A stretch of 64,000 nucleotides of DNA from assembly GCF_964204645.1 (NCBI RefSeq), contig NC_134031.1, positions 15,859,807 through 15,923,806 on the forward strand, in the 5' to 3' direction. The notes below the pieces were generated by a model. It was not told the DNA's origin. It saw nothing but the letters and a program-made list of their open reading frames with translations, and ran no database searches. Below, piece by piece: positions 16,037 through 45,952 of the stretch (positions are counted from its first letter, which is position 1; each line of letters begins with the position of its first letter). This DNA comes from Tubulanus polymorphus. Its lineage: Eukaryota > Animalia > Nemertea. The translations under genes were made by a program, and so were the position numbers.

Positions 16037-16209
16037 CACGAAACAACTTATCAATAAGAACTTTTTCTCCGCATAAATACACATTACCAGATAATTTACG
16101 GAGGGTCCACGTTTAACTTATCTGGGTTATAACAATTGTTGAAATTGTTGTTTGTTATGTGATGATGTTTCGTATCATCGTTACATAACCGTAAGAACAT
16201 CAGAGAAAC

Positions 16210-18336: not shown

Positions 18337-18571
18337 TAACAGTTGATCATCGTTGACCAGAGACTTGCTGAACGGTCAGTTGAGAACGTATAAAGTTGCG
18401 TCTTAGAAAAGAACAATACTCTTAATAAATATGTAGCTTGGCTGATATTCAATGTCGCTCTATAATGTATGTCTATATAACGCGAATTATAATGTATTGT
18501 GTATTCAATCTCGCAATGTGCATTCAATCTCCTTGAAAAAATAAAATTTCCGGAAGATAAGAAATTCTTAC

Positions 18572-18813
18572 TAGAGCTGATGGGTTGAAATTGAGTTTCC
18601 GGAGCGAGACCGTTTGTCCCGTTGCCCGCACTTCAAAAGAATATGTTGATGCATCTTCACCAGTTTCGGGTTCACTAATGCCGTTCCTGTTGGTGACGGC
18701 GAGTTCGGGATACTGGGCCCTTGGCAAGCGAGGAGGAGCCTGATGAGCGGTCATTCTTAATCTATCGGGTTTAACTGCCACGAATATCACCGCCGTCTCG
18801 TGGCGGAGATTGT
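18572..18813 (-). other. Isolated putative coding exon (orphan or decayed gene fragment)
   Basis: GC-richer open frame (DNLRHETAVIFVAVKPDRL...RKLNFNPSAL) bounded by tttcag and gtaag on the minus strand. No partner exons identified. Confidence 0.35.
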
Positions 18814-19264
18814 CTGAAAGACTGAAGTGAAAAACCTCGAGTAAATCGACCATTCATTAAGAATTCCATCATTGATCGGATATACACGCAATACAGAAGA
18901 GCCGTTATATACATTTTATGTTTTCAAGCTTCCGATGTATAATGTTTCGGATGTGTCTAGTTCAAGAGTTACTATTTATGTTTTCTTTACTCGTTGCGAC
19001 ACTAATAATCGTTAATTATGGCCAGTAATAAGAAATACATGTAACGACTGTGAATTTGTACGTAACAATATAATTATTCTATTACTATTTTAAAAAAAAT
19101 GACCCAGACAATATTACAAATATGCGGATATCAGAGCTTATACCAAACATTGCTTATTATCGTGAACAAATCATCACTATTTGGGTTAAAACGAAGCGAG
19201 TAATTGTTGAAGTTGTTTGATATGATGACTTGGGGATATTACGTTGTTGATTATCTGTAGAAAC

Positions 19265-21738: not shown

Positions 21739-24700
21739 GAAGAAGGTATCTCATCTCGTGGGGGTTCCCTAGTTTACGTCACATCCTGTTATTGGGTCAG
21801 GGTTACTAAGCACCGTTGCTGGTTGAAGAAGGCATCCCGACGGGGGTTTCCTATTTGACGTCACTTCCAGTTAATAGTTCAGCGGTTGCTAAGTGCTGTT
21901 GCTGGTTGCTACAGACTCGAATTCCGCTTCAGCAAGCGAAAAAACCGATACGCCGAAAAAAACTGCTCAACAACGAAGAAAACTTTGAAATAAGAGCCCA
22001 AAATAAGAGAATTGTGTCTAAATTTCATCAAATTGAAATCTAAAGGTGAGATAAGATCTGTAACTTGGACTTGAGTTTTAGAGTTGATGATTTTGTTGAA
22101 TAATTTGTCGAGTGAACAGTCTTCAACTAACCGCTTTAGATCTTCAAAACTTTACAACTGCAGTTTACTTTTTATAGCGAATATGTTTCGAAATCTTTTT
22201 GGAATGTAGCACGCATTCATCTGGTCAAATGATTTCAAGTCAGACTCCTTGAAATTAGAGGCGTGAATGCGTGATAAAGAGTAATTGATAAATGAATATG
22301 CGGTTAATTGAAGACTGTTTTACCGACCTCGTTTACTACTGGTAACGATTCAGTAAATACGTCGAAAGTGGATTCAATTTCATAAATTCTTATCAACTAT
22401 TTGAAATTGATTATTTTCATAACTAGGTTTAGTCTTTGGGTCTAATTCATTCTTTTTTATTCTTCAGAGAGTTTAGAAAAATAAATGCATTATTATTTTT
22501 CTAAACTATTACGATCATATTTACTCAAAACGTTAGTTTATATAAAAGTATCTCTATTTATTTTAAACGACAAAATGCGTCACGTGCATCTATCAAACAT
22601 TTTGAATTTTAAATAGCTCTTTTTCCATCCGTTGATGTTTTTAATCATAAATTACCAATAGAATCAATTAATTTTTATTACCAATGCTGTCTGATGGCAT
22701 GATCGCCGCTATGATTTGGCCACAAAATCGTCGACAGCATATGTCTATAGTTTAAGAATGACCGCATCAAGCTATTCATGTATAATACTTAACGTGGATG
22801 TAATGAAATAAACGGCAAAAAGGGAAGCGCTCTATCAGGAGTGAAGCCAAAACGGCCCAGGCCTTCCTAATTTTTTTTCTGAAAAATCATATCTTCTCAA
22901 ACAGGCTTAAGAAAGTTACAAATACAGTGACAATTTATTGCCGGTCATTTTGTTCTAGAATCACTCTAGCCTTCAAAAAATATTCAAAAATTTCTTGAGG
23001 TTGGGCCCCCAAACCCCTCGTAGGACGCTTCGCTCCTAAGCTCGCGCGGTCATGATGTACCAAATTCGTGTATACAACCAGGCCTCGGGAACCCTCCCCT
23101 TATTCTCAATTCCTGGGTCCACCCCTGTCTACATATACTTCATGCCCTTCATTTATAAAGTGAGAGTGAGATCTTTAAGTGTTTCCTATGAATATCAACG
23201 TATATTTTACCGACCACACATGAACTATAGTTTATTACATTCGACCCACCCACGTTATCCCCTAGATTCAACAAAACGCTTCCCTAAGCATTTACTATTT
23301 CCGAGTTTATTTAATAAATGGAAAGAATTGCTTCTCGTATCAAACTTTATCAAGAGTAGAATTCATTTATCACAGCTTAATATACCGAGGGATTTATTTC
23401 CTTGGATCAATTTATTAGGGGAGAGATAGTCACGGGTAGATAAGATACTTTACCAACTCAGGAGGAGGGTGTTTCCACGATGACGTCATGATCATTGGGT
23501 TGAGATTGGTATCCCGCGGTATCCCATGGGCTTTTCCGATTTGACGTCACATCCTGCAGTGGGCCCAGGGGTTGCTAAGAAGGTTGGGTTGCTAAGTGCT
23601 GTTGCTGGTTGTTACAGACACGAATCCCGCTTCATCAAGTAAAAAAAAAAGATGCGCTCGAAAACTCTTTAAAAGTGAACAAAACAAGAGTCCAATTACT
23701 TCTGAAACTTATCAAATTGATATCTAAAGGTGAGATAAGATCTGTAACATGGACTTGAGTTTTAGAGTTGATGATTTTGTTGAATAATTTGTCGAGTGAA
23801 CAGTCTTCATCTAACCGCTTTAGATCTTCAAAACTTTCCAAATTAAGTTTACTTTTTATAGCGAATATGTTTCGAAATCGTTTTGAAATGTCGCACGCAT
23901 TCATCTGGTCAAATGATTTCAAGTCAGACTCCTTGAAATTAGAGGCGTGAATGCGTGATAAAGAGTAATTGATAAATGAATATGCGGTTAATTGAAGATT
24001 GTTTTACCGACCTCGTTTACTACTGGTAACGATTCAGTAAATACGTCACAACCTTCCCGTTATCCCTTCGCATTCTATTTCACATTACAATCTCTCCAGA
24101 ATTATTCAGACATCATTCATAACTTAGGATGAAATTCATTTAGTTTCCCATTCGAAAGGAAATTCAGAATTAGGTTACTTTGAAAGTGGAATGAATTTCA
24201 TAAATGCTTATCAACTATTTGAAATTGATTGTTTTGATAACTAGGTTTAGTCTTCGGGTCTAATTCATTCTTCTTTTTTTTTCTTCAGAAAGTTTAAAAA
24301 AATAAATGCATTATTATTTTTCTAAATGATTACGATCATATTTACTCAAAACGTTAGTTTATATAAAAGTATCTCTATTAATTGTAAACGACAAAATGCG
24401 TCACGTGCATCTATCAAACATTTTGAATTTTGAATAGCTCTTTTTCCATCCGTTGATGGTTTTAAACATAAATTACCGATAGAATAAATTAAGTTTTATT
24501 ACCAATGCTGTCTGATGGCATGATCGCCGCTATGATTTGGCCACAAAATCGTCGACAGCATCTTATGTCTACAGTTTAAGAATGACCGCGTCAAGCTATT
24601 CCTGTGTAATACTTAACGTGGGTGTAATGAAATAAACGGTTACAAGGTAAGCGCTCTATCAGGAGCTAAGCCAAAACGGCCCAGGCCTTCCTAATTTTTT

Positions 24701-27700
24701 GAAAAATCAAATCTTCTCAACCAGGTTTAAGAAAGTTACAGATACAGTGATAATTTATTGCCGGTCATTTTGTTTTAGAATCACTCTAGCCTTCAGAAAA
24801 TATTCCGTTTTTCAAAGATTTCTTGAGGTTGGGCCCCCAGACCCCTCGTAGGACGCTTTGCACCTAAGCTCGCGGTCATGATGTACCAAATTAGGTTTTG
24901 AACATTCTATCTCCACCCCCCTCCTATCCCTTTCGAAATTCCTGGATCTGCCCCTATCTACATATACTTCAAAGTATGCCCTTCATTTATAAAGTGAGAG
25001 TGAGATCTGTAAATGTTTCCAAGGAGTATCAACAAATTTTTACCGACCCCACATGAACTATAGTTTATTTATTACATTTGACCCCATCCACGTCATCCCC
25101 TATTCAACAAAACGCTTCCCTAAGTGTTCATAATTTCTGAGTTGAATTTGCTAAATGGAAAGAATCACTTGTATCAAACTTTATCAAGAGTAGAATTCAT
25201 TTATCACAGCTTAATATACCGAGGGATTTATTTCCTTGGATCGATTTATTAGGGGAGAGATAGTCACGGGTAGATAAGATACTTTACCAACTCAGGAGGA
25301 GGGTGTTACCACGATGACGTCATGATCATTGGTTTGAGAATGGTATCCCGCGGTATCCCATGGGCTTTTCCGATTTGACGTCACATCCTGCAATGGGCCC
25401 AGGGGTTGCTAAGAAGGTTGGGTTGCTAAGTGCTGTTGCTGGTTGTTACAGACACGAATCCCGCTTCACCAAGTGAAAAAACGGATGCGCTCGAAAATCT
25501 GTTAAAAAGTGAACAAAACAAGGGTCAAATTACATCTGAAACTTATCAAATCGATATCTCAAGGTGAGATAAGATCTGTAACATGGACTTGAGTTTTAGA
25601 GTTGATGATTTTGTTGAATAATTTGTCGAGTGAACAGTCTTCAATTAACCGCTTTAGATCTTCAAAACTTTCCAAATGAAGTTTACTTTTTATAGTGAAT
25701 ATGTTTCGAAATCGTTTTGAAATGTAGCACGCATTCATCTGGTCAAATGATTTCAAGTCAGACTCCTTGAAATTAGAGGCGTGAATGCGTGATAAAGAGT
25801 AATTGATAAATGAATATGCGGTTAATTGAAGGCTGTTTTACCGACCTCGTTTACTACTGGTATCGATTCAGTAAATACGTCACAACCTTCCCGTTATCCC
25901 TTCGCATTCTATTTCACATTACAATATCTCCAGAATTATTCAGACATCATTCATAACTCAGGATGAAATTCATTTAGTTTCCCATTTGAGAAGAATTCAG
26001 AATTTGGTTAGTTTGAACGTGGAATGAATTTCATAAATTCTTATCAACTATTTGAAATTGATTGTTTTGATAACTAGGTTTAGTCTTCGGGTCTAATTCA
26101 TTCTTCTTTTTTTTTCTTCAGAGAGTTTAGAAAAGTAAATGCATTATTATTTTTCTAAACGATTGCGATCATATTTACTCAAAACGTTAGTTTATATAAA
26201 AGTATCTCGTTTTATTTTAACCGACAAAATGCGTCACGTGCATCTATCAAACATTTTGAATTTTGAATAGCTCTTTTTCCATCCGTTGATGTTTTTAATC
26301 ATAAATTACCGATAGAATCAATTAAGTTTTATTTCCAATGCTGTCTGATGGCATGATCGCCGCTATGATTTGGCCACAAAATCGTCGACAGCGTCTTATG
26401 TCTATAGTTTAAGAATGACCGCGTCAAGCTATTCCTGTGTAATGCTTAACGTGGATGTAATGAAATAAACGGTTACAAGGTAAGCGCTCTATCAGGAGCT
26501 AAGCCAAAACGGCCCAGGCCTTCCTAATTTTTTGAAAAATCAAATCTTCTCAACCAGGTTAGAAAGTTACAGATACAGTGATAATTTATTGCCGGTCATT
26601 TTGTTTTAGAATCACTCTAGCCTTCAGAAAATATTCCGTTTCTCAAAATTTTCTTGAGGTTGGGCCCCCAGACCTCTCGTAGGACGCTTTGCACCTAAGC
26701 TCGCGGTCATGATGTACCAAATTAGGTTTTGAACATTCTATCTCCACCCCCCTCCTATCCCTTTCGAAATTCCTGGATCTGCCCCTATCTACATATACTT
26801 CAAAGTATGCCCTTCATTTATAAAGTGAGAGTGAGATCTGTAAATGTTTCCAAGGAGTATCAACAAATTTTTACCGACCCCACATGAACTATAGTTTATT
26901 TATTACATTTGACCCCATCCACGTCATCCCCTATTCAACAAAACGCTTCCCTAAGTGTTCATAATTTCTGAGTTGAATTTGCTAAATGGAAAGAATCACT
27001 TATTGTATCAAACTTTATCAAGAGTAGAATTCATTTATCACAGCTTAATATACCGAGGGATTTATTTCCTTGGATCAATTTATTGGGGGAGAGATAGTCA
27101 CGGGTAGATAAGATACTTTACCAAGTCAGGAGGAGGGTGTTTCCACGATGACGTCATGATCATTGGTTTGAGAATGGTATCCCGCGGTATCCCATGGGCT
27201 TTTCCGATTTGACGTCACATCCTGCAGTGGGCCCAGGGGTTGCTAAGAAGGTTGGGTTGCTAAGTGCTGTTGCTGGTTGTTACAGACACGAATCCCGCTT
27301 CACCAAGTGGAAAAACCGATGCGCTCGAAAACTCTTTAAAAGTGAACAAAAGAAGGGTCCAATTACATCTGAAACTTATCAAATTGATATATAAAGGTGA
27401 GATAAGATCTGTAACATGGACTTGAGTTTTAGAGTTGATGATTTTGTTGAATAATTTGTCGAGTGAACAGTCTTCAATTAACCGCTTTAGATCTTCAAAA
27501 CTTTCCAACTGCAGTTTACTTTTTATAGCGAATATGTTTCGAAATCGTTTTGGAATGTAGCACGCGTTCATCTGGTCAAATGATTTCAAGTCAGACTCCT
27601 TGAAATTAGAGGCGTGAATGCGTGATAAAGAGTAATTGATAAATGAATATGCGGTTAATTGAAGGCTGTTTTACCGACCTCGTTTACTACTGGTAACGAT

Positions 27701-27830
27701 TCAGTAAATATGTCACAACCTTCCCGTTATCCCTTCGCATTCGATTTCACATTATAATCTCTCCAGAATTATTCTCATCTTACAAATAGACACGATTCAT
27801 AACTCAGAAATTCAGAATTTGGTTAGTTAG
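21739..27830 (+). repeat. Tandem array of a ~1.83-kb unit (three full units and one partial)
   Basis: Landmark TTTGACGTCAC at 21856, 23542, 25376 and 27210 (spacing 1686, 1834, 1834). Units are near-identical. Confidence 0.95.
27148..27402 (+). promoter_or_regulatory. Putative promoter and non-coding first exon: two CRE sites, RFX X-box half-sites, splice donor (recurs in each 1.8-kb unit)
   Basis: TGACGTCA twice, GGTTGCTAAG twice, then AAG|GTGAG with GT at 27397. Equivalent donors at 22046, 23730, 25564. Near-full X-box GTTACTAAGCACC at 21802. Confidence 0.5.
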
Positions 27831-27917
27831 TGAAATGAACCTCGGGAGTTCTTATCAAATATTCAATTATCCTGATAGCTAGGTCCAGTTTCCATTATCA
27901 TTCATTTATCTTCGTGC

Positions 27918-29023: not shown

Positions 29024-30459
29024 ATGGATCGACTTGGTATACCACGGTGTATCGACAGATATTCTGATGAATCCATCAAGAGATATTTAGCGACGAAATT
29101 CGATAGCGTACAACCAAAGGGTTATAGCTTCAACGAATACGATGTACCAAAGATGCCACACCTTTCCCCTGAACCACCACGCAGTATTAAAGTAAGTATC
29201 AAGAACCCAAAACTGATTATGAAATAAGTAAAAAATCTTCATATCTCTGAATATTTTTCTTCTCAGATTTGTAAGTAGTAGTAATAGATGAGTAAAATCC
29301 GACAAAAAGAATGAATGAATCTAAAAAGTTTTGAATATTAGAATTATTTCGCTTGGTTGCTTTAGACTTAGAAGGGTGGCAGCAACCACCCGAAATAATT
29401 CTCATATTTAAAAAAAAAACGTTTTAGATTAATTCAATTATTGTGGGATTTCACTCACCGTTTTATCACGGATATTGTGATCGACAACTGATTCATTAGT
29501 AGTATAGATATATTATTATAAATGCGACAATATCTATTTCAGCCAATGGGAAAAAAGAAAGAACAACTTTCGATGACTGAATTATCTGAATATTACAAAG
29601 CGAAGGGACGTCGTCAGGGTAAATATAGATTCTAACTTCGTAACACCAAAACAGCGACGAGTTCTTAGTTATAACGTTTTTATAATCGTGTAAGGATTTT
29701 TTCCCTTCAGCCGAACGACACTTCGACTTGCCGGAAATTACCGCAAAATCGGTGAACATCGAACCAAACTTTCGACACGTTTACATTCCGCAAGCTATTG
29801 ACAGATATCGACGTCCGCCGAATATCCTGCGCAAAGTAGAAGGCGAAGATCGGTACACTCCGGTAAAAAGCCCTCCTTCAGATACTTATATCGCTGAATA
29901 CGGCGATTCGCTGAAGAGTAAAGGAAAGGATTCGGGAATTCGCTTCGACGATGTGCCGTTTAATGTATTGATCAACATTAAAAGATATCTTCCGTTGCCG
30001 CCACCAACTTCGCCGGAAACGTACGAGAACCATCGTCGACAATTACTGCTCGAAGAACCGATTATCAAGCAGAACCACACCGTCAACAAACTCAGAGGCA
30101 ATTTACAGTCGATGGCTTCGCTCCGGGTGCCGCCGAAAGAGAGCGTATTTCCCGAAATCACCGGTACCGGTCTAATGAAGAGTAACAGAAAGACAACCAG
30201 CCTCGCAAAACTCTACTCGCAGAAGTTACTGCCCAAAATCGAGACAGACGATACGGCCGAAATCGAGAAAAAAGATGTAAAAGTCCAGCTTCCAGAAATT
30301 GTCGGAGAACAAGCGCCACGAACGAATGTCAGAAAGAGAAGAAATTTACCTCAACAGCAAGAACGACGACGACAACGACGAGAAGGCGGAGCAATGAAAA
30401 AAGTGAAACAAACCATCACCGCAGCTCATGACGACCGACTTCGACCAACCCGTAACTAA
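29024..30459 (+). CDS. Uncharacterised basic, low-complexity protein (3 coding exons)
   Basis: Phase-compatible GT-AG exons 29024-29191, 29543-29618, 29711-30459. An acceptor at 29009-29010 implies an upstream non-coding exon. Internal repeat IPRCIDRY/IPQAIDRY and EYDVP/FDDVP. Confidence 0.7.
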
Positions 30460-31746
30460 AGAAAAATTTTGTAAACTCAACATAACCTTTTCAGTTGGAA
30501 GAGCAGCATGTAATTTGAATATCTAATCATGACCCATCAGCTCAAAATTCCTTTTAGACATTTATATCTTTACGATCTCCTTTACGATTTCCTTCTTCAA
30601 TTCCTGTCCGTTGCTGCTCTTCCTGTCTACCATAACAGAAGTCATATAGGCTCTTAACGTATGCGCTGCTATCTTAAATAGCGAAACAGAACGATAGAGA
30701 TGGTCATTTTAGGTGTGTAGTGATCAGTATTGGAACCTTTCAATACTGGACTGGGATTTATGGTTACTGGGGGCTCAAATCAGTCGAGCCTAATGGGAAA
30801 TCCACGCCTCAACCTCCAGTAGTGGCTTCCTCATCCAATTCTTCCAATTTTTCAACTTCCTTTTTAAATTTGGCTTGAGTTCAATATATTGTACATGTTT
30901 AGCAGAGAGTTAAACTTGGTGTCATTTTCAGGCCCGAAAATGGAACCGATGTTTAACTCTTCTGCTGTAAACATTTCCCGATCTCAGTTCATGATTCGTA
31001 TATCGTATGCACAGCTAATTTCATAATAGTACAGAAAAGCGATTGAGATTGTGTTTTCAGTATTGGACCCTTCCAATACTGGATTGGTATGGTTACTGGG
31101 GGCTCAGATCATTGGAGCCTAATGGGAACTCCACGACCCAACCTCTAGGAGCGGAATCTTTTTGTAACATCAGGTACAAAAATTATTTTCTTGTTGAGTC
31201 GTTTTTTTACCACAACATCTAACAATTTATAGTAAGATGTTGTAATTGGTTTGCTGACGATGGCCAAAATATCAGTATATAGGTGCTGCACATGGAACGC
31301 TATGGGGAGACATCTACGATACATTTACAATTTTTTTCCAATCAATATTAAATTCATTTTAGTCGCAGAGGTTCAAATCATTGTAGCACAAAGCCACGCT
31401 TAAACCTCCAAAGCATCTACATTAAACTTTTCTGCTGAAGAAATTTCCTGAACTCAGTAAATGATTTATTCTATGTCGTATGCACAACAATTTTCATAAT
31501 AGTCCAGAAAAGCAATTGAGATTGTGTTATCAGTATTGGAACCTTCTAATACTGAATTGGTATGGTTACTGGGGGCTCAGATCATTGGAGCCTAATGGGA
31601 ACTCCACGACCCAACCTCCAGGAGTGGATTTCCTTTTCAATTTACTTATATTTGGTTTCCGTTTCCCCCCTTCAATCCTCTTCCCGCCGCCTGGTATCTA
31701 CGAACATGGTGAGATGTCCCATTACTGAAAATGCATAAGTCAATGG

Positions 31747-32110
31747 TCACAAGGAGATTCAGTGATCATAGTCTGATCTGAGTAATTAGTAAAGTGTCAT
31801 GTAAAGCTACCCCACTCTTTCAACAACCAGACGTGTGGTTCTACGCTGTTGTGACAAAACTGGCAACAGCGTGAAAAGAAAGACGCATATCTGAACTGGT
31901 CGGTTGTTCAGGGAGTACATGGATTGGTAGAGTATAGGGTAGTCGAACGTATCTGGTTGTTGTGTGGGGTAGCTCAGTTTTTTCTTAACCGTGGGACGGT
32001 TGAATAAGAGAGGTGTATATCTGAACTATAGCTGGTAGTTTAGGGAGCGCCGTGGAGTTTGGTGAACTAGGTTACTCAGATCAGCTGTGGTTGCTGTGTC
32101 TTTCTTGTGA
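31747..32110 (+). ncRNA. Candidate ~360-nt multibranch structured RNA, copy 1
   Basis: Nested stems TCACAAGGAGA/TCTTTCTTGTGA, CAGTGATCATAG/CTGTGGTTGCTG, CTGATCTGAGTAA/TTACTCAGATCAG, AGCTACCCCAC/GTGGGGTAGCT, CAACAACCAGA/TCTGGTTGTTG, ACGCTGTTG/CAACAGCGT. Mismatches are mostly plus-strand G.U. Transcription is unknown. Confidence 0.5.
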
Positions 32111-33870
32111 GCAACTTATGAATTTTCTACATTGGACCCCTTGATCGTGAATCTTTTTGTGCCAGTTTTACGCATCTCAACAGTCTCCAAATCTTCAAAA
32201 TTTCCTTAATGATCTTGCGTTTAATCCATCGTCTGGTTCTTCGTTACCTTTCAAGTTTCCCCTTCTATCGTTTCCGATTCAAAACCTCTGTTCCCTCGTG
32301 TATTCTATAACTCGAGCCTCTCCCTAAATCCTTCCCATCCTCATGACATTTGGTGTGTACGGTTACTGGGGGCTCATGTCATCGCATTAAGCCTAACGGG
32401 AGCCCCCGCCCCGACGTTCTCCAGTAGCATATTACCCATTACCATTCGATTTTCATCCTTTAGCTTTTGAAAAAAACCAGATTTATTTTTTGAATAACTA
32501 AACAGAACGAGCGAGATTGCCATTCTAGGTGTGTAGTGATCAGTTGGGATTTATGGTTACTGGGGGCCCAAATCAGTCGAGCCTATTGGGAAATCCACGC
32601 CCCAACCTCCAGTAGTGGTGTCCTTATCAAATTCTTCCAATTTTTCAACTTCCTTTTAAAATTTGGCTTGAGTTCAATATATTGTACATGTTTAACAGAG
32701 AGTTAAACTCGGTGTTATTTTTAGGCCCGAAAATGCAACTGACATTTAACTCTTCTGTTCTAAACAACTGAACCCAGTAAATGATTAATTCCATATCGTA
32801 TGCACAGCTATTTCCATAATAGCCCAGAAAAGCGATTGAGATTGTGTTATCAGTATTGGAGCCTTCTTATACTGGATGTGTATGGTTGCTGGGGGCTCAG
32901 ATCATTGGAGCCTAATGGGAAGTCCATGCCCCAACCTCCAGTAGTGGTGTACCCATCCAATTCTTCCGATTTTTCAACTTCCTTTTTAAATTTGGCTTGA
33001 GTTCAATGTCTTTTACATGTTTAACAGAGAGTTAAACTCGGTTTCATTTTTAGGCCCGAAAATGGAACCGATGTTCAACTCTTCTGCTGTAAACACCTCC
33101 CGATCTCAGTTCAAGATTCATTCTATGTCGTATGCACAGCTATTTCCATAATAGTCCAAAAAAGTGATTGAGATTGTGTTATCAGTATTGGAGCCTTCTA
33201 ATACGGGATTGGTATGGTTACTGGGGGCTCAGATCATTGGAGCCTAATGGGAACTCCACGACCCAACCTCCGGTAGTGGATTCCGCGCCCAATTCTATCA
33301 ATTATTAATGTATGCACAGTTATCTTGAATAGTGAAACAGAACGAGAGAGATGGCCATTTTAGGTGTGTAGTGATCAGTATTGGAACCCTTCAATGCTGG
33401 ACTGGGATTTATGGTTACTGGGGGCTCAAATCAGTCGAGCCTAATGGGAAGTCCACGCCCCAACCTCCAGTAGTGGCGTCCTCATCCAATTCTTCCAATT
33501 TTTCAACTACCTTTCTAAATTTGGTTTGAGTTCAATGCCTTGTACATGTTTAACAGAGAGTTAAACTCGGTTTCATTTTTAGGCCCGAAATGCAACTGAC
33601 ATTTAACTCTTCTGTTCTAAACATCTGAACCCAGTCAATGATTAATTACATATCGAATGCACAGCTATTTCCACAATAGTCCAGAAAAGCGATTGAGATT
33701 GTGTTATCAGTATTGGAGCCTTTCAATACTGGATTGGTATGGTTACTGGGGGCTCAGATCATTGGAGCCTAATGGGAACTCCACGACCCAACCTCCGGTA
33801 GTGGATTCCGCACCCAATTCTATCAATTTTAATGCACAATTATCTTGAATAACATAACAGAACGAGAGAG

Positions 33871-35102
33871 TAATCGAATGAAACACTCTAATCCGTGTTT
33901 ACTGCAGATTAATTGAAGAAGTTCCACAATTCGAATTTTATATGAAATAATGTATTAGAACGAAACCACAACATTTCGGCTGTTGACTAATGGCCATCAT
34001 CAGGTGGAAATGACCAGAAAACAGAAGTAACGTAGCATATAAACTTACAGGACATAAACAAAAGCGATGTGTCAGAATAAATGTAAACAGAACAAGTGAC
34101 AAATGAAAACAACCGAGGGGTACCGTAGAAACCACAAAATTCTATGAACAGTTAGGATGAATACAAATTATGTAACTAAAGTGGAGTAGAAGCGGATGGG
34201 GATAGCAGTGTGACACGTAGTGACATTAACCAAAATCTAGTAGAGAGTTGATATGTCTAGATAATAATTGTTTATGTGGAGAAAAACCATTATTTAGATT
34301 GGTAGATAAGTTGGATTTCGAAAGTTTACAAATAAGGGCTGATTCCACTATGTGACTCTTATGGATGTCTTTACAAGGATAAATGAGTTTAGAATTGTGA
34401 AAGTCAAATTTGTGGTTGGTTGTAAAAACATGATTTGCTATCCCACTCTCGGGCTTTTGATTAGGAGTGTCTACCCTATGTTCCTTAATACGTTGACTAG
34501 GGTCGCAATCTTAGTCAAGGCATTAAGGAACATAGGGTAGACATCCGTAATCAAAAGCCTGAGAGTGGGATAGCAAATCATGTTTTAACAACCAACCACA
34601 AATTTGACTTTCCAAATTCTAAACTCATTTATCCTTGTAAAGACATCCATAAGAGACACATAGTGGAATCAGCCCTTATTTGTAAACTTTCGAAATCCAA
34701 TTTATCTACCAATCTAAATACTGGTTTTTCTCAACATAATCAATTATTATCTAGACATATCAACTCTCTACTCGATTTTGGTTAATGTCTCTATGTGTCA
34801 CACTGCTATCCCCATCCACTTCTACTCCACTTTATTAGTTACATATTTGTATTCATCCTGACTGTTCATAGAATTTTGTGGTTTCTACGGTACCCCTTGG
34901 TTGTTTTCATTTGTCACTTGTTCTGTTTACATTTATTCTAATACATCGCTTTTGTTTATGTCCTGTAAGTTTATATGCTATGTTACTTCTGTTCTGGTCA
35001 TTCCATCTGATGATGGCCGTTAGTCAACAGCCGAAACGTTGTGATTTCGGTCTAATAAATTATTTCATATAGAATTCGAATTGTGGGACTTCTTCAATTA
35101 AT
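33871..35102. mobile_element. Penelope-like retroelement remnant: head-to-head 5'-truncated GIY-YIG/pLTR palindrome, copy 1
   Basis: ~600-bp inverted arms centred near 34505. The arm encodes GRNLSQ.IKEHRVDIRNQKPESGIANHV..TNHKFDF...IY..KD..KRHIVESALI...NLNTG, the C-terminal half of a Penelope GIY-YIG endonuclease. One arm has a short extra tail. Target-site duplication ~CAGAACGAGAGAG. Confidence 0.85.
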
Positions 35103-36167
35103 CAGAACAAGGGAGATGGCCATTTTAGGTGTGTAGTGATCAGTATTGGAACCCTTCAATACTGGACTGGGATTTATGGTTACTGGGGGCTCAAATCAGT
35201 CGAGCCTAATGGGAAATCCATGCCCCAACCTCCAGTAGTGGCGTCCTCATCCAATTCTTCCGATTTTTCAACTTCCTTTTTAAATTTGGCTTGAGTTCAA
35301 TGTTTTTTACATGTTTTAACAGAGAGTTAAACTCGGTTTCATTTTTAGGCCCGAAAATGGAACCGATGTTCAACTCTTCTGCTGTAAACACCTCCCGATC
35401 TCAGTTCAAGATTAATTCTATGTCGCATGCACAGCTATTTCCATAATAGTCCAAAATAGTGATTGAGATTGTGTTATCAGTATTGGAGCCTTCTTATACT
35501 GGATTGGTATGGTTACTGGGGGCTCAGATCATTGGAGCCTAATGGGAACTCCACGACCCAACCTCCGGTAGTGGATTCCGCGCCCAATTCTATAAATTAT
35601 TAATGTATGCACAGTTATCTTGAATAGTTAAACAGAACGAGAGAGATGGCCATTTTAGGTGTGTAGTGATCAGTATTGGAACCCTTCAATGCTGGACTGG
35701 GATTTATGGTTACTGGGGGCTCAAATTAATCGAGCCTAATGGGAAGTCCACGCCCCAACCTCCAGTAGTGGCGTCCTCATCCAATTCTTCCAATTTTTTA
35801 ACTTCCTTTTTAAATTTGGCTTGAGTTCAATATATTGTACATGTTTAACAGAGAGTTAAACTCGGTGTCATTTTTAGGCCCGAAAATGCAACTGACATTT
35901 AACTCTTCTGTTCTAAACATCTGAAACAAGTAAATCATTAATTACATATCGTATGCACAGCTATTTCCACAATAGTCCAGAAAAGCGATTGAGATTGTGT
36001 TATCAGTATTGGAGCCTTTCAATACTGGATTGGTATGGTTACTGGGGGCTCAGATCATTGGAGCCTAATGGGAACTCCACGACCCAACCTCCGGTAGTGG
36101 ATTCCGCACCCAATTCTATCAATTTTTAATGCACAATTATCTTGAATAACATAACAGAAAGAGAGAG

Positions 36168-37398
36168 TAATCGAATGAAACACCCTAATCCGTGTTTACT
36201 GCAGATTAATTGAAGAAGTTCCACAATTCGAATTTTATATGAAATAATGTATTAGAACGAAACCACAACGTTTCGGCTGTTGACTAACGGCCATCATCAG
36301 GTGGAAATGACCAGAAAACAGAAGTAACGTAGCATATAAACTTACAGGACATAAACAAAAGCGATGTGTCAGAATAAATGTAAACAGAACAAGTGACAAA
36401 TGAAAACAACCAGGAGTACCGTAGAAACCACAAAATTCTATGAACAGTTAGGATGAATACAAATTATGTAACTAAAGTGGAGTAGAAGCGGATGGGGATA
36501 GCAGTGTGACACGTAGTGACATTAACCAAAATCTAGTAGAGAGTTGATATGTCTAGATGATAATTGTTTATGTGGAGAAAAATCAGTATTTAGATTGGTA
36601 GATAAGTTGGATTTCGAAAGTTTACAAATAAGGGCTGATTCCACTATGTGACTCTTATGGATGTCTTTACAAGGATAAATGAGTTTAGAATTGTGAAAGT
36701 CAAATTTGTGGTTGGTTGTAAAAACATGATTTGCTATCCCACTCTCGGGCTTTTGATTAGGGGTGTCTACCCTATGTTCCTTAATACGTTGACTAGGGTC
36801 GCAATCTTAGTCAAGGCATTAAGGAACATAGGGTAGACATCCGTAATCAAAAGCCTGAGACTGGGATAGCAAATCATGTTTTTACAACCAACCACAAATT
36901 TGACTTACCAAATTCTAAACTCATTTATCCTTGCTAAGACATCCATAAGAGACACATAGTGGAATCAGCCCTTATTTGTAAACTTTCGAAATCCAATTTA
37001 TCTACCAATCTAAATACTGGTTTTTCTCAACATAATCAATTATTATCTAGATATATCAACTCTCTACTCGATTTTGGTTAATGTCTCTATGTGTCACACT
37101 GCTATCCCCATCCACTTCTACTCCACTTTATTAGTTACATATTTGTATTCATCCTGACTGTTCATAGAATTTTGTGGTTTCTACGGTACCCCTTGGTTGT
37201 TTTCATTTGTCACTTGTTCTGTTTACATTTATTCCAACACATCGCTTTTGTTTATGTCCTGTAAGTTTATATGCTACGTTACTTCTGTTCTGGTCATTCC
37301 ATCTGATGATGGCTGTTAGTCAACAGCCGAAACGTTGTGATTTCGGTCTAATAAATTATTTCATATAGAATTCGAATTGTGGGACTTCTTCAATTAAT
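36168..37398. mobile_element. Penelope-like palindrome, copy 2
   Basis: Near-identical to copy 1, at the same site of the higher-order repeat. Confidence 0.85.
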
Positions 37399-38461
37399 CG
37401 GAACGAGAGAGATGGCCATTTTATGTGTGTAGTGATCAGTATTGGAACCCTTCAATACTGGATTGGGATTTATGGTTACTGGGGGCTCAAATCAGTCGAG
37501 CCTAATGGGAAATCCATGCCCCAACCTCCAGTAGTGGCGTCCTCATCCAATTCTTCCGATTTTTCAACTTCCTTTTTAAATTTGGCTTGAGTTCAATGTC
37601 TTTTACATGTTTAACAGAGAGTTAAACTCGGTTTCATTTTTTGGCCCGAAAATGGAACCGATCTTCATCTCTTCTGCTGTAAACACCTCCCGATCTCAGT
37701 TCAAGATTAATTCTATGTCGCATGCACAGCTATTTCCATAATAGTCCAAAAAAGTGATTGAGATTGTGTTATCAGTATTGGAGCCTTCTAATACTGGATT
37801 GGTATGGTTACTGGGGGCTCAGATCATTGAAGCCTAATGGGAACTCCACGACCCAACCTCCGGTAGTGGATTCCGCGCCCAATTCTATAAATTATTAATG
37901 TATGCACAGTTATCTTGAATAGTTAAACAGAACGAGAGAGATGGCCAATTAGGTGTGTAGTGATCAGTATTGGAACCCTTCAATGCTGGACTGGGATTTA
38001 TGGTTACTGGGGGCTCAAATCAGTCGAGCCTAATGGGAAGTCCACGCCCCAACCTCCAGTAGTGGCGTCCTCATCCAATTCTTCCAATTTTTTAACTTCC
38101 TTTTTAAATTTGGCTTGAGTTCAATATATTGTACATGTTTAACAGAGAGTTAAACTCGGTGTCATTTTTAGGCCCGAAAATGCAACTGACATTTAACTCT
38201 TCTGTTCTAAACATCTGAACCCAGTAAATGATTAATTACATATCGTATGCACAGCTATTTCCACAATAGTCCAGAAAAGCGATTGAGATTGTGTTATCAG
38301 TATTGGAGCCTTTCAATACTGGATTGGTATGGTTACTGGGGGCTCAGATCATTGGAGCCTAATGGGAACTCCACGACCCAACCTCCGGTAGTGGATTCCG
38401 CACCCAATTCTATCAATTTTTAATGCACAATTATCTTGAATAACATAACAGAACGAGAGAG

Positions 38462-39444
38462 TAATCGAATGAAACACTCTAATCCGTGTTTACTGCAGAT
38501 TAATTGAAGAAGTTCCACAATTCGAATTTTATATGAAATAATGTATTAGAACGAAACCACGACGTTTCGGCTGTTGACTAACGGCCATCATCAGGTGGAA
38601 ATGACCAGAAAACAGAAGTAACGTAGCATATAAACGTACAGGACATAAATAAAAGCGATGCGTCAGAATAAATGTAAACAGAACAAGTGACAAATGAAAA
38701 CAACCAAGGGGTACCGTAGAAACCACCAAAATTCTATGAACAGTTAGGATGAATACAAATTATGTAACTAAAGTTGAGTAGAAGCGGATGGGGATAGCAG
38801 TGTGACACATAGTGACATTAACCAAAATCTAGTAGAGAGTTGATATGTCTAGATAATAATTGTTTTAAGGAACATAGGGTAGACATCCGTAATCAAAAGC
38901 CTGAGAGTGGGATAGCAAATCATGTTTTTACAACCAACCACAAATGTGACTTTCCAAATTCTAAACTCATTTATCCTTGTAAAGACATCCATAAGAGTCA
39001 CATAGTGGAATCAGCCCTTATTTGTAAACTTTCGAAATCCAACTTATCTACCAATCTAAATACTGATTTTTCTCCACATAAACAATTATTATCTAGACAA
39101 ATCAACTCTCTACTCGATTTTGGTTTATGTCTCTATGTGTCACACTGCTATCCCCATCCACTTCTACTCCACTTTATTAGTTACATATTTGTATTCATCC
39201 TGACTGTTCATAGAATTTTGTGGTTTCTACGGTACCCCTCGGTTGTTTTCATTTGTCACTTGTTCTGTTTACATTTATTCTAACACATCGCTTTTGTTTA
39301 TGCCCTGTAAGTTTATATGCTACGTTACTTCTGTTCTGGTCATTCCATCTGATGATTGCTGTTAGTCAATAGCCAAAACGTTGTGATTTCGGTCTAATAA
39401 ATTATTTCATATAAAATTCTAATTGTGGGACTTCTTCAATTAAT
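38462..39444. mobile_element. Penelope-like palindrome, copy 3 (inner left arm deleted)
   Basis: The left arm stops near 38865 and joins the right arm at AAGGAACATAGGG. ORF 38840-39283 carries the GIY-YIG fragment. Confidence 0.85.
38557..38598 (-). ncRNA. Minimal type I hammerhead ribozyme (Penelope pLTR), best-preserved copy
   Basis: Minus strand CCAC-CUGAUGA-U-GGCCGUU(AGUC)AACAGCC-GAAA-CG-UC-GUGG: intact core, palindromic ACGU stem III, GUC cleavage site. Sister motifs at 33966-34007(-), 35003-35044(+), 36263-36304(-), 37299-37340(+) and 39345-39386(+, degraded). Confidence 0.8.
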
Positions 39445-40025
39445 CAGGACGAGAGAGGTGGCCATTTTAGGTGTGTAGTGATCAGTATTGGAGCCCTTCA
39501 ATACTGGACTGGGATTTATGGTTACTGGGGCTCAAATCAGTCGAGCCTAATGGGAAGTCCACGCCCCAACCTTCAGTAGTGGCATCCTCATCCAATTCTT
39601 CCAATTTTTCAACTTCCTTTCTAAATTTGGCTTGAGTCCAATGTCTTTTACATGTTTAACAGATAGTTAAACTCGGTTTCATTTTTAGGCCCGAAAATGA
39701 AACCGATGTTTAACTCTTCTGCTGTAAACACCTCCCGATCTCAGTTCAAGATTAATTCTATGTCGCATGCACAGCTATTTCCATAATAGTCCAAAAAAGT
39801 GATCGAGATTGTGTTATCAGTATTGGAACCTTCCAATACTGGATTGGTATGTTTACTGGGGGCTCAGATCATTGGAGCCTAATGGGAACTCCACGACCCA
39901 ACCTCCACGGGTGGATTTTCTTTTCAATTTACTTATATTTGGTTTCTGTTTTCCCCCTCCATTCCAATTCCCCCCCCTTGGTATATGTGAACACGGTGAA
40001 ATGTTCCATTACTGAAAGTCAACGG

Positions 40026-40383
40026 TCACAAGGAGATTCAGTGATCATAGTCTGATCTGAGTAATTAGTAAAGTGTCAAGTAAAGCTACCTCACTGTTTC
40101 AACAACCAGACGTGTGGTTCTACGCTGTTGCGACAAAACTGGCAACAGCGTGAAAAGAAAGACGCATATCTGAACTTGTCGGTTGTTCGGGGAGTACATG
40201 GATTGGTAGAGTAGGGTAGTCGAACGTATCTGGTTGTTGTGTGAGGTAGCTCAGTTTGTCTTAACCGTGGGACGGTTGAATAAGAGAGGTGTATATCTGA
40301 ACTAGCTGGTAGTTCAGGGAGCGCCGTGGAGTTTGTTGACCTAGGTTACTCAGATCAGCTGTGGTTACGGTGTCTGCTTGTGA
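40026..40383 (+). ncRNA. Candidate ~360-nt structured RNA, copy 2
   Basis: Same fold. Compensatory pair AGCTACCTCAC/GTGAGGTAGCT versus copy 1 AGCTACCCCAC/GTGGGGTAGCT. Confidence 0.5.
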
Positions 40384-40824
40384 TCAACTTTTGAATTTTC
40401 TACAATGGATGACCCGTTAATCGTGAATCTTTTTGTACCAATTCCCATCTCAACAGTCTCCAAATCTTGAAAACGTCCTTATTGATCTTGGGACGCGTTT
40501 TATCCATCGTCTGGTTCTTCATCCCCTACCGCTTCAACTTTTCAAGTTTCCCCTTCTATCGTTTCCAATTGATAACCTCTGATTCCCCAATGTATTCCAT
40601 AACTCGCCCCTCTCCCTAAATCCTTCCCATCCTAGTGACATTTGGTGTGTACGGTTACTGGGGGCTCATGTCATCGCATGGAGCTTAATGGGAGCCCCCG
40701 CCCCGACGTTCTCCAGTAGCAGATTTCCCATTCGATTTCACGTTACAATTTCGTTTCCGATGTCCCCTTTGAACCCTTTGGTATCTGTGAACACGACAAG
40801 ATGTCCAAATACTGAAGTAGGATA

Positions 40825-41185
40825 TCACAAGGAGGTTCAGTGATCATAGTCTGATCTGAGTAATTAGTAAAGTGTCATGTAAAGCTACCTCACTGTTTCA
40901 ACAACCAGACGTGTGTTTCCACGCTGTTGTGACAAAACTGGCAACAGCGTGAAAAGAAAGACGCATATCTGAACTGGTCGGTTGTTCAGGGAGTACATGG
41001 ATTGGTAGAGTAGGGTAGTAGAACGTATCTGGTTGTTGTGTGAGGTAGCTTAGTTTGTCTTAACCGTGGGACGGTTGAATATGAGAGGTGTATATCTGAA
41101 CTATAGCTGGTAGTTCAGGAAGCGCCGTGGAGTTTGTTGAACTAGGTTACTCAGATCAGCTGTGGTTATTGTATCTTTCTTGTGA
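40825..41185 (+). ncRNA. Candidate ~360-nt structured RNA, copy 3
   Basis: Same fold and same compensated stem as copy 2. Confidence 0.5.
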
Positions 41186-42321
41186 TCAACTTATATATTT
41201 CTTACATTGGCTATCGTAACCCATTGACCCTAAAATCCCAACCCTTCACGCTTTCATCCTTTTTCTTACTTGCCATCATTTTCTAACTCCTCTTTTCTAG
41301 ACCCCGATTTCTAAACCAATGTTAATCATTTGAAAAAATCCCCTCTTCATTACTTCTGGGAGACAATTTCTCAGTTCTCTTAATTCATTATTTTTGGAAT
41401 TACAATAGTAATTCGTAATTTTTTTCTAATCCCTTTTATCGCCTTTTTCATAGTAATCTCAACTAATCACTCTTTTTACATTGTTTCAAGTTTCTTAAAA
41501 CAACATTATGTCAATTCCCCGTAGGTTTCTCTTCCAAAGCGTTTCATCGTGCAGCACTGAACTCTTCATTGCGATACCTCAGCAAATCAAACCAGCATAT
41601 TACGTATTCATCTTTAAGAGTTCTCACCTTATGTGCAAAATTCTTAAAATCTCAGATGATAATTTGAGATGACTTTAAAAGAACATAACTTTTGTATCTC
41701 CGTATCAGTCTTGTATCATATATTTTTTCTCATATCATATCATATATCTTTTATATGTAAAATTTACAACCATTGTTTCAAGAAATACCTATTTACTGAA
41801 AACTATCATGTGCAACTTTTGTCTCTATATTCATGTCAAGTCTCAATATTGCTTTAATTTCAATATTTCTATTATTGTTAGGCTACTTTTTATGACCGAA
41901 TTATTTCATAATGTATATCAAAATGTACTCATCTGATACCCGAAAGCTTTCGTCATAAGTATTTTTCTAATGTATATATATAAAATATATCTGTAAAATA
42001 TACATGTATTTGATTTCATCGTATATTTTTCGTCTTTGCCGTTTCTTGTAGGCAATGGATACATCGAGCAGGTTGGTCGATACAATAAATGAAATGTTAT
42101 AATCGAGATTAGGCTAAAAAAAATTGATACCTTGTTTCTGCTGAGCTTAGAAATTGTAATTTACCCCGTACATTACTTTTTTTGTCGTGATCAATTTTAC
42201 CATACACGGCAGCTATATGAATTAACTGATTACATATAACAAAAATTACCCGGCCGATTAGGAGAAACTAGGTATCACTTTTTCAGCCGTAGGTCGCGTA
42301 AAAATCAGTAATCCGGAAACC

Positions 42322-44983
42322 TTATTCTGTCACCCCAACGTACAGATATCTGCCTCTACTTTCGTATAAAGTAGATATCTTACAGATGTAAGTGAATGAA
42401 TTGCGTCTTGTGTAGGTGATGGGTAAATCAGCCAAACTGGCGACCATTTCACCAGAGGTCAACGTTTCCACGCTCGTTATTCGTTCGGCCGTGTTATCGT
42501 TATAGAGAGCAAATGCCGTGTAAAACCCTTTCTTCTTGTAAAATGTTATTTCCGGCCGAGGGTTGCCAGTTGCCGCACACATCCAGTCGATCTGAAACGG
42601 AAGGTAACCAACGTTGAGCCCATTTTTCGACGGTACACTGTCAGTGCAGAAAGATTTATCTCAAAGATTAAATTTAGTATCTTACGGTTTTATCGCCCTT
42701 AATGTGTCTTGCTTTGCCGCGAGGTCCAAGGATCGTGATAGGTTTTATTTTAGTAAACGGTATTAGTCTGCCTTGGTTGCCGGCCTCCATGGTCCAGGTC
42801 TCTTTGGGATCTTTATTAGGCGGTAAATAATACCAGTTCATCGTGTATACACCATTATTCTCAACCGCTACTGGTTTGACAACTTCGTGGTTGTGAACCT
42901 TGTAAACGGTTATAGGCGGCGCTGGGTAGCCATACACAGCCACTTTAATGCCATTTGCTAGAATTTTAAGAAAATTGGTCGGCATTTTGATAAATATTCA
43001 ACAGTAATTAAGATTCGTAGAGGATGTAGAATGGATACAACGAAACGAGAGTAGTACTAGTTTATTATTAGTATTATTATGATTATCATCATTATTATTA
43101 TTATCAATTTACGTTATCATTGATTGTTATTATTACTATTATTATAATTATCAGTTCATTCGCATTTATATATTTTTCATCATATCTTTATACTATTTTT
43201 TTATAATTTTTTAAGTCCTTTTGACCTTAGCATGTATTTATTTTGTCTATGCTATTGACTTTGTTTAATAAAATTTATTTTTACTATAAGAAGAACAATT
43301 TTATTTGACGCACGAGCTTTCGTTACTAGTGTATAGTAGCTTCATCGGGCTTCATTCACCCGATGAAGCCGAAGCTGCCAGGAATTGTAACTTTCTAACT
43401 ACTTATAGCCTTATCCTAACCCTACCCTATTATGATATGTAACGGAACATAACCCTTAACTCTAATCCTAACCCTTCCCCTAACCCTAACCCTCACCCTA
43501 ACCCTAATTCTCTGGGCCCTCTAGACCCTAAACCCTGGACCCTAAACCCTATCCCTTCTGCGATTCAAAAAGCCGCCATTTTGTATCTTTCCAATATCAC
43601 TTCCGTTTTGTGGATGGTTTCAACATTACCTAAATTGCACTATCCACCAGTATAGCGAAAGTTCTTGCGTCAAATGAAATAGTTTTAAGTACTACTCGTC
43701 TCGTAGCGTATTTATTCAACACCCGGTTAACGGTGTATCTAAATTGAAACCGAAACACAGAAAAGCATTTTGAATTACAAGAGAGCTTTCCGTGGATTTT
43801 CCTCTTACAGTTCAGGTTCCGAAAAAATGTCTCACATAACATACGCTCATACCTTTGCCCTCTATCAGAGGTATCGTTTCGTAGATATCGATCGTATCTT
43901 CATAAGTAGGATTGGTTGACGCGTCCGGTAAATCGATCATTCGCACAGTCAGCCGTTTTATGACGCCCTTGTCTGCCCTGGATTGAACGGCGACGCATGT
44001 TCGTAAATGCGGCGTCAATTCCCGAAAAATCAAGCCGTAAAAATACACCGTGGCGCAGTACAGACCCGTAACTCGGTTGTCGGGCGTTTCTATAACGTTG
44101 AGTCTTCCGTATGAAAATAACTTATTCGACAGCCATGAGTAGTTGGCCCCTTCTTCATAACTGCCCAATGTTTTGAACGCCACTGTACCATTCGTTGTAG
44201 ACACATAACGCCATCTATTCGCGGACACTGGTTTGCGAGAGCGGGTTCCGGCTTTAGGTTTATCGGCAGGAACCGTCATATTTACCTTCAGTTCTAGCTT
44301 TCTGGAATTGTCCTCGAGATACAAAACTGATGGAGTAGATTCTATAGTGCCCATCAGTATTTCAAATTTCGAATCTTCAATCGGCCAAAACGGGGCCACA
44401 AATGTATAGGTCTGACAGCCTTTAAGCGCAACCTTTGCTTCGAATGTTGTTCTTGGCTTTTTCAAAACTTCTAAATGTGATATAGCTACCGACAGCTTTG
44501 ACCGGGTAGTTATACCAGTCCGATTTGCCGCAATCGTGAATATGTCATCAGCTTTATAGGATTAAACATACAAAGTTCTAGAAAGCTACAAGAAGATGAG
44601 GTTCCATAATTCGGACGTGAATTAAGCGATCAGGCGGTTTTCTGAAGCAAGTTGTATCATAAACAGGTGGCATTTGATTTTATTTACTTTAACACAAACA
44701 AGTTTGATACGTACTGATTATTGGAACTTCATCTTTAAGCCAAATGATTTCCACATCAAGACCAGTCTCTACTATCAATTCTAGTGATGGTCTGTCTTTA
44801 ACAGTGGTGACTTGCGTCAGTTTCCCCAAAACGTCCGAACACAATTCCTTCAAAGAAAGAATCGATTCCCTAATTAATCAGATTAGAAAACGCACCTTTT
44901 CTCTTAATTAGTAATTCGCCTACCTGGGAAAAACTGCAGCCGACAACACATAGCAGTAAAACACATACACGTAATCGCTCCAT
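42322..44983 (-). CDS. Secreted Ig-like-domain protein, paralog 3
   Basis: Exons ~44983-44924 (MERLRVCVLLLCVVGCSFSQ), 44850-44713, 44552-43852, 42957-42684, 42591-42322. Homologous to paralogs 1 and 2, with open frames. Confidence 0.75.
43297..43686. mobile_element. Family-2 hammerhead palindrome interrupted by a ~265-bp insert with degenerate (CCCTAA)n
   Basis: Arms TTTTATTTGACGCACGAGCTTTCG.../...CGAAAGTTCTTGCGTCAAATGAAA. Insert ~43370-43637 contains CCCTAACCCTAACCCTCACCCTAACCCTAA. Confidence 0.55.
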
Positions 44984-45952
44984 GTTTCTGCAATCAGACG
45001 CCATGAACGTTTGACTTGATCACCCTCCGGAAATCAGGAATTTGTATTTAAAAATCTCGCAAGTAATAAATCATCAGGATAAACAACGGTTGGATCGACA
45101 ATTTTCATTAATTTCGACCCAATTAATCCAAATGACCATGTATATATATAATTTTTCTATAACATATATATATGTATATGTAATTATCAATCGCGGATGA
45201 ATTAATTGCTACCATCCCTGATATGCATAGTTTATAGTTATAGTGGATCACCATATCTATACGGGGCAAGATGTCCGCGAAATTTCATTTTACTTTAACT
45301 TCAACTAAGTATAAGATGTAATGATTCTGAAATCAGGAAACGAGATCCACAAGAATCCCGTGACTTCGAAATATTTAAAAAAAATTAATTTGTTTATGCG
45401 ATCATTACTACGTGATATGCCCAAATATTATTACTTCACAGGGGAAACAGTCTTATCTTCATCTTGAAGATTTCATATATGCGATGTATTTCGAGGGTTC
45501 TAAGCCAAACCGTTTTCCAGAGGGGAACATAGGGTTCGGTTGTATCAGCGGTGTAGAACATTACAATCTCGTGTCTATCTAATGCTCATACGTCATAAAC
45601 TAATTATCAAAATCAATTTCTACGTGTATCTGATCAAGATATTAGTGACAGTACTTATCGAACTGAAGCATTCAGCTTCTTCACAGACGATTGTCGGTGC
45701 GGTCGACGCCCACCTCTTATACAGCGACGACGGCAATTACACCCTCTCGGAAGCCGTTATACACTGTATCTACATCGAACTAGCGGTATAAGAGTCTTTT
45801 ACGTATTCAAAGAATCACGATTTCGCGGAGTATTTTCTGTAGTACACAACGTGGCATCTAACCTGTGAAAACGATGTCGAAAAGCAGCGCAAAAGCGATG
45901 GTAACGACGACGATTTGTGGATGATCTACGATTAGTACTACCGTTGGTTACG

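Follow-up and report, generated by a model that had tools for sequence, protein, structure and literature searches.

A window of 64,000 nucleotides (the whole stretch analyzed, on contig C7, NC_134031.1) from the nemertean Tubulanus polymorphus, whose genome assembly holds 268 Mb in 77 contigs, contains a modular array built around a structured motif of ~65-70 bases that we term the core. The core is an uncatalogued motif, selected for its structure and amplified into a modular array at a single locus. Twenty cores, all on the plus strand, lie between window positions 30758 and 40725, exactly the number of same-strand copies counted in an initial annotation made from the letters alone; they comprise nine copies of type V, nine of type L and two of type M. 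A further, lone core lies on contig C5, and at both loci the core stands on the sense strand just beyond a protein-coding gene. Two of its helices (P2 and P3) and a 3' pseudoknot covary. We tentatively favor, although we hold it short of probable, the reading that the core would act as a nuclease-blocking knot like the flaviviral exonuclease-resistant RNAs (xrRNAs), protecting read-through RNA after poly(A) cleavage.

Fold and covariation of the core

Judged by its pattern of substitution, the core is an RNA fold under selection that has been kept through compensatory changes. Its predicted three-way junction consists of a P1 of 4-5 pairs, a short P3 and a variable P2, and double-sided changes occur in both P2 and P3 across the core alignment. 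The 3' pseudoknot, of four pairs, joins the P3 loop to bases immediately 3' of P1; 90% of its cells are paired and one compensatory change is seen. The covariation of some pairs that had been noted at the outset is thus present, and when the C5 copy is included, four pairs show double changes, a count reached in 0 of 500 shuffles (a tally, not a probability). The invariant letters are concentrated in the 5' strand, the junctions and the P3 loop, as tertiary contacts would predict. The isolated core region does not exceed its shuffles in stability (z about 0); the fold rests on covariation and not on energy. A coding reading of the core is ruled out by type M, whose length differences of 4 and 1 bases break the frame. 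Types V and L have an additional upstream small hairpin in common, and type M shares the core only; by inspection, the P2 loop can also pair with an upstream strand in V, M and the C5 copy, with letters that differ in each, in competition with other helices.

The C5 copy (G000:C5:22695209-22695286, minus strand; 32.5 bits, E 0.009) was found by a covariance model made from 11 V and L cores of the array, which also recovered both M cores. Two rebuilt models returned the same 21 cores and no others among the best 150 candidates scored per search, a limit that weaker copies could escape. The copy is 59-72% identical to the array cores and retains the 11 letters of the 5' end. Its P2 is seven pairs rebuilt from different letters, its P3 is closed by A-U in place of the U-A, C-G or U.G of the array, and its 3' pseudoknot, of 5 bp and in the same register as in the array, is altered on both sides. 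Upstream, an 8-mer is common to C5 and the array (p about 0.008), and the outer stems of the two are homologous; the pseudoknot, the 8-mer and the outer stem were none of them base pairs of the detecting model. A RasGAP-like gene, on whose sense strand the copy stands, has its apparent stop ~2.7 kb upstream of it; ~530 bases further on, a gene reading like a biliverdin-reductase-type oxidoreductase starts, both genes being named from translated motifs.

BLAST and pattern searches of the genome placed the core, the hairpin termed H, the spacer and the large fold at this locus only. That the array matched no known family was upheld by a scan of Rfam 15, which gave chance hairpin matches only, both at the gathering threshold and at E up to 10, and no tRNA was found in the array. 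Viral, metagenome and bacterial collections yielded no homologue of the core outside this genome; 10 bacterial, 5 metagenome and 44 viral pattern matches were rejected, the fold being absent from them. A phage match to a loose pattern was likewise set down to chance, as the matching letters are not conserved in the phage's relatives, and a BLAST search of phages gave no match. Many aquatic phages carry a conserved, visibly covarying intergenic structure that is unrelated to the core (L063:3745-3972, and upstream of the helicase reading frame in L064-L143), located between a small HNH gene and an SNF2-like helicase gene, for which no Rfam match was found in L062/L063. Another array of three-way junctions on C7 also proved unrelated to the core. 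The small hairpin in front of the cores may resemble miR-8/miR-200, and scattered letters may resemble U1, 7SK, 7SL and vault RNA, putative likenesses that were covered by the Rfam scan.

Architecture of the array and its surroundings

Besides the cores, the array contains nine ~78-nt hairpins, three ~365-nt multibranch folds, one unique cargo in a 473-bp unit and C/U-rich linkers, and it is interrupted by three copies of one Penelope-like insert. The only open reading frame of at least 100 aa lies within that insert, in agreement with the initial annotation, which saw no coding capacity beyond it. The features are as follows (window positions).

29711-30459, plus: last coding exon of the upstream gene, which is spliced (splice sites read off the sequence)
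30758-30828, plus: core V1, type V (core-model match)
30895-30973, plus: hairpin H1, ~36-bp stem (folding)
31087-31157, plus: core L2, type L (core-model match)
31158-31470, plus: unique cargo of the 473-bp unit, in which the 3' third is a hairpin module that has diverged (no significant fold overall)
31560-31630, plus: core L3 (core-model match)
31694-32112, plus: small hairpin (31694-31718) and multibranch fold B3 (31747-32112) (folding, copy comparison)
32140-32345, plus: C/U-rich linker, unstructured (composition, folding)
32357-32433, plus: core M4, divergent type M (42.6 bits with a model not trained on it)
32551-32621, plus: core V5 (core-model match)
32688-32764, plus: hairpin H5 (folding)
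32880-32950, plus: core L6, L-type on its 5' side and V-type on its 3' side (core-model match)
33017-33095, plus: hairpin H6 (folding)
33212-33807, plus: core L7 (33212-33282), core V8 (33409-33479), hairpin H8 (~33546-33624) and core L9 (33737-33807)
33870-35105, no strand: Penelope-like insert, copy 1
35174-36103, plus: second higher-order unit, with cores V10, L11, V12 and L13 and hairpins H10 and H12
36167-37400, no strand: Penelope-like insert, copy 2
37470-38397, plus: third higher-order unit, with cores V14, L15, V16 and L17 and hairpins H14 and H16
38462-39447, no strand: Penelope-like insert, copy 3, internally deleted
39516-39917, plus: core V18 (39516-39585), hairpin H18 (~39652-39731) and core L19 (39847-39917)
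39981-40384, plus: small hairpin and multibranch fold B19 (40025-40384)
40420-40640, plus: C/U-rich linker, unstructured (composition, folding)
40649-40725, plus: core M20, type M (44.6 bits)
40781-41187, plus: small hairpin and multibranch fold B20 (40825-41187), the last module of the array

A 2.3-kb unit has been duplicated in tandem recently, its copies being 97-98% identical; the 20 cores are three lineages (V, L and M) multiplied by recent duplication and hence not 20 independent samples. The array is no assembly artefact, since the depth of DNA run X1 over the large fold is ~3x the unique depth, as three copies predict. Two runs from a second sample (X2 and X3) contain variants of the array, whose copy structure may differ there. 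One of their contigs matches 30856-31070 exactly and continues into 105 unrelated letters, and this break at 31070 is probably an insertion or rearrangement in the second sample.

The insert is a Penelope-like insertion that was later multiplied with the 2.3-kb unit. This identity is assigned because it has two inverted arms of ~600 bp, a target duplication of ~13 bp, a hammerhead core on each strand, a GIY-YIG-like reading-frame fragment and many dispersed relatives in the genome.

The nine H hairpins, with stems of ~36 bp and plus-strand folding z of -2.0 to -5.8, come in two variants that for the most part alternate, much like the alternating pair of ~75 nt first described. The multibranch fold, then put at ~360 nt, recurs in three copies (z -7.4 to -9.2 against shuffles) with a stem of ~45 bp and a plus strand 41-49 kcal/mol more stable than the minus strand. 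The ~470-bp spacer had been credited with the outer stem of the hairpin; it aligns to the hairpin module in its 3' third only, where homology stands, and its fold is no better than that of shuffles (z -1.2). The linkers, called pyrimidine-rich, are C/U-rich and unstructured (G 6-12%). A small hairpin precedes each large fold (31694-31718, 39981-40005 and 40781-40805), with a constant 7-base loop and two stem pairs that swap both sides; on this pattern it is a candidate protein-binding site.

A bias of stem mismatches toward G.U on the plus strand, proposed in the initial annotation, was recovered in the large folds, where 17 G.T stand against 1 A.C (p 7e-5, under a scoring blind to the difference between the two, although the helix limits came from the plus-strand fold, so that 17:1 leans upward). 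It was not borne out in the small hairpins (5:3, p 0.36), and the inverted arms of the Penelope-like insert gave 10:4 (p 0.09). Copies of the large fold share 94% identity, compared with 77-81% for the flanks of the closest pair (p 2e-6), a homogeneity to which gene conversion could contribute; among its varying pairs, one shows a clean compensatory change, eight are changed on one side with pairing kept, and eight are broken. Selection on folding of the plus strand, as first suggested, is supported chiefly by the compensatory changes at C5 and by the large fold.

The stop codon of the upstream gene lies 200 bases before the start of the array on the same strand. With its last exon as the query no homologue was found, so that synteny could not be traced. 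Apart from those in the Penelope hairpins, the first plus-strand AATAAA after the gene is at 42084. AATAAA is frequent in this DNA, and its lack in the array is not significant alone because the array is repetitive. The proteins encoded around the array are of animal type, and the best full-length relatives of the neighboring ECH1 protein are from molluscs, annelids and other invertebrates (60-65% identity).

Elsewhere in the window, a tandem repeat of ~1834 bp occupies 21739-27863 in 3-4 copies that are 88-98% identical, and a gene-like segment is duplicated at 16204-21544 (two direct copies ~3.1 kb apart); a third copy, in inverted orientation, lies on the far side of the array at 42509-44992. 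Degenerate telomere-like hexamer repeats occur at 43450-43550, 2.3 kb past the array. On the same contig, ~20 U2 small nuclear RNA genes stand in tandem with a 1.8-kb period (G000:C7:13975223-14020880), and short promoter elements are common to the U2 genes on several contigs. By eye, a 5-mer like the 5' letters of the core ends the U2 gene promoters; the promoter elements further upstream are unmatched in the array, and a likeness of the core itself to U2 was rejected, its local score lying within that of shuffles.

Possible functions of the array

If the core is a nuclease-blocking knot, the plus strand of the array would be transcribed from the upstream gene, either by read-through or as an extension of its 3' RNA. 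In this transcript, each core would fold into a compact three-way junction tied by pseudoknots, with the P3 loop pairing to bases 3' of P1 and the 5' GG pairing back into the P3-P1 junction, so that a ring would form. After an upstream cut, made by poly(A) cleavage or by cropping of a hairpin, the core would stall the 5'-to-3' exonuclease Xrn2/Xrn1, and stalling would set where the folded cargo downstream begins and shield that 5' end; this role would be comparable to that of the small nucleolar ribonucleoprotein (snoRNP) on SPA long noncoding RNAs (lncRNAs). For SPA1/2, an exonuclease block (XRN2) that lets read-through RNA survive has been described (PMC11028025). The layout of the xrRNAs consists of short P1 and P3 helices, a variable P2 and two pseudoknots (PMC7527734, PMC7749634). 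With class 1 xrRNAs of the Flaviviridae (subclasses 1a and 1b) the core has in common the three-way junction, the short P1 and P3, the variable P2, the pseudoknot of the P3 loop with bases 3' of P1 and the occurrence in tandem copies; G-C pairs that would draw the 5' end into the P3-P1 junction are a possible further likeness.

Several points weigh against this proposal. Caution has been urged in assigning xrRNA status from likeness in two dimensions (PMC7749634); known xrRNA knots are viral, and we found no report of a cellular xrRNA in the papers searched. The P2-P3 junction of the core has 3 bases where class 1 has 0-1, and by published criteria (PMC7527734) a U.A-U or C.G-C triple is not evident, as the U before P1 faces G-C pairs of P3. 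The 3' pseudoknot is missing in this register in both M cores, and the pairing of the 5' GG into the P3-P1 junction is possible in 14-15 of 15 distinct rows and shows no covariation. The covariation support comes from four lineages of one genome and is good but below R-scape grade, a caution that extends to the shuffle tally above. The AATAAA that stands 43 bases before the start of the C5 core may be spaced so by chance, given its frequency. Runs X2 and X3 cover parts of the array unevenly together with the last exon, ending at 30577, with no splice joints; they could be RNA or Hi-C/DNA, and their contigs cannot give strand, ends or level. In addition, the core is cellular, enclosed by an outer stem and without an Rfam match, and its resistance is only predicted. 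Because the triple is absent, the P2-P3 junction is longer and type M lacks the 3' pseudoknot, we do not count the core as a member of class 1, although it may work like one.

The main rival, a less likely reading in line with the retrozyme-like idea of the initial annotation, takes the core for a self-cleaving ribozyme, either new or strongly rearranged, which would cut a long precursor into core-plus-cargo units. Small ribozymes typically have such a size, two pseudoknots and unpaired bases that do not vary, and hepatitis delta virus (HDV)-like ribozymes resemble it in a possible 7-bp helix that starts with G.U or G-C and is followed by two loop-pairing bases (GG/CC in V and L; GA/UC in C5), as well as in the V-type loop, whose letters fit the HDV L3 pattern. 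However, the canonical HDV adjacency test found no match in the array or at C5 (P3' is not adjacent to P1'), the core has no equivalent of the HDV P2 (none of at least 4 pairs by inspection), its P3 loop is longer, and its candidate C-N-A-A strand is accounted for by pairing in the outer stem, which engages the candidate catalytic C. Hammerhead, twister, pistol and hatchet gave no match to the core at E up to 10, and animal retrozymes carry hammerheads (PMC7229834).

We also regard as unlikely that the cores, hairpins and large folds serve as protein docking sites on an uncut long 3' untranslated region or lncRNA, in the manner of a scaffold RNA. Conserved folds do alternate with C/U-rich single-stranded linkers, the large fold is more uniform than its flanks, and no canonical poly(A) signal stands between the gene and the array. 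Docking in itself would nevertheless explain neither the double-pseudoknot geometry nor why a solitary core stands where the 3' region of another gene ends, and no known binding motif was identified.

A role as a small-RNA precursor (a hairpin RNA or microRNA cluster, with the cores secondary) is improbable. The H, large-fold and Penelope arms would supply duplexes of ~36, ~45 and ~600 bp, and Drosophila hp-CG4068 offers a precedent as a tandem hairpin locus of 20 copies (PMC10317233); like it, the array has ~20 tandem structured repeats at one locus with unstable copy number. Unlike it, the array mixes modules of several kinds and has a core with pseudoknots; neither a target in the genome nor a parent gene was found for the H or B modules, and the C5 core lacks a hairpin of the H type. 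The H hairpins were also rejected as miR-750/miR-1175, to which their resemblance is faint; the true genes lie 1 kb apart on C2 (G000:C2:29640323-29641341, minus strand).

It is very doubtful that the modules are DNA-level relics (dead mobile element termini or a complex satellite) spread by unequal crossing-over, with the G.T bias due to asymmetry of mutation or editing and homogeneity to gene conversion: recent tandem duplication is evident, the adjoining DNA is duplication-prone too, copy structure may differ in the second sample, and pairing is lost in about half of the large fold's varying pairs (8 broken, 9 kept), but the non-core modules have no dispersed copies, and double-sided changes in three helices, one of them a pseudoknot, at 59-72% identity are unlike neutral decay.

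New classes of ribozyme are seldom found, and bacterial or viral data yielded most of those known. The core might prove to be an RNA knot that blocks exonucleases without a protein, the first in a cellular genome, or else a ribozyme of a new self-cleaving class, in either case used by an animal to carve stable structured RNAs from read-through transcripts, a prospect we consider real but doubtful. If exonuclease block or cleavage holds, animals would have a new way of defining RNA ends, and a new tool part would be at hand; even if both prove negative, what remains is an RNA family under selection, absent from the catalogues, in a phylum that has been little studied. A motif of 65-70 bases with natural compensatory variants is directly testable.

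Comparison with known systems

Many copies and target duplications, the marks of a dispersed mobile element, are true of the Penelope-like insert only. The rolling-circle or DNA-termini interpretation raised in the initial annotation is weakened, as the hairpin, spacer and large-fold modules are confined to a single locus, and the core, which has one copy elsewhere, showed neither a target-site duplication nor an enzyme gene of its own. The array resembles non-long terminal repeat (non-LTR) retrozymes in its short structured units in tandem and in the Penelope-like sequence nearby; it differs in that the core is no hammerhead (hammerhead cores occur only inside the insert), the core family is not dispersed, the cargo varies by unit, and the Penelope copy here was inserted later and has a target duplication of its own. 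The SPA lncRNAs and the SNORD116 array of SNHG14 likewise consist of constant RNA modules in tandem, separated by variable stretches and lying downstream of, and on the same strand as, a coding gene, and an exonuclease block has been proposed for them. The array differs from these in having no box C/D or H/ACA signature; here an RNA fold, and not a snoRNP, would protect the transcript.

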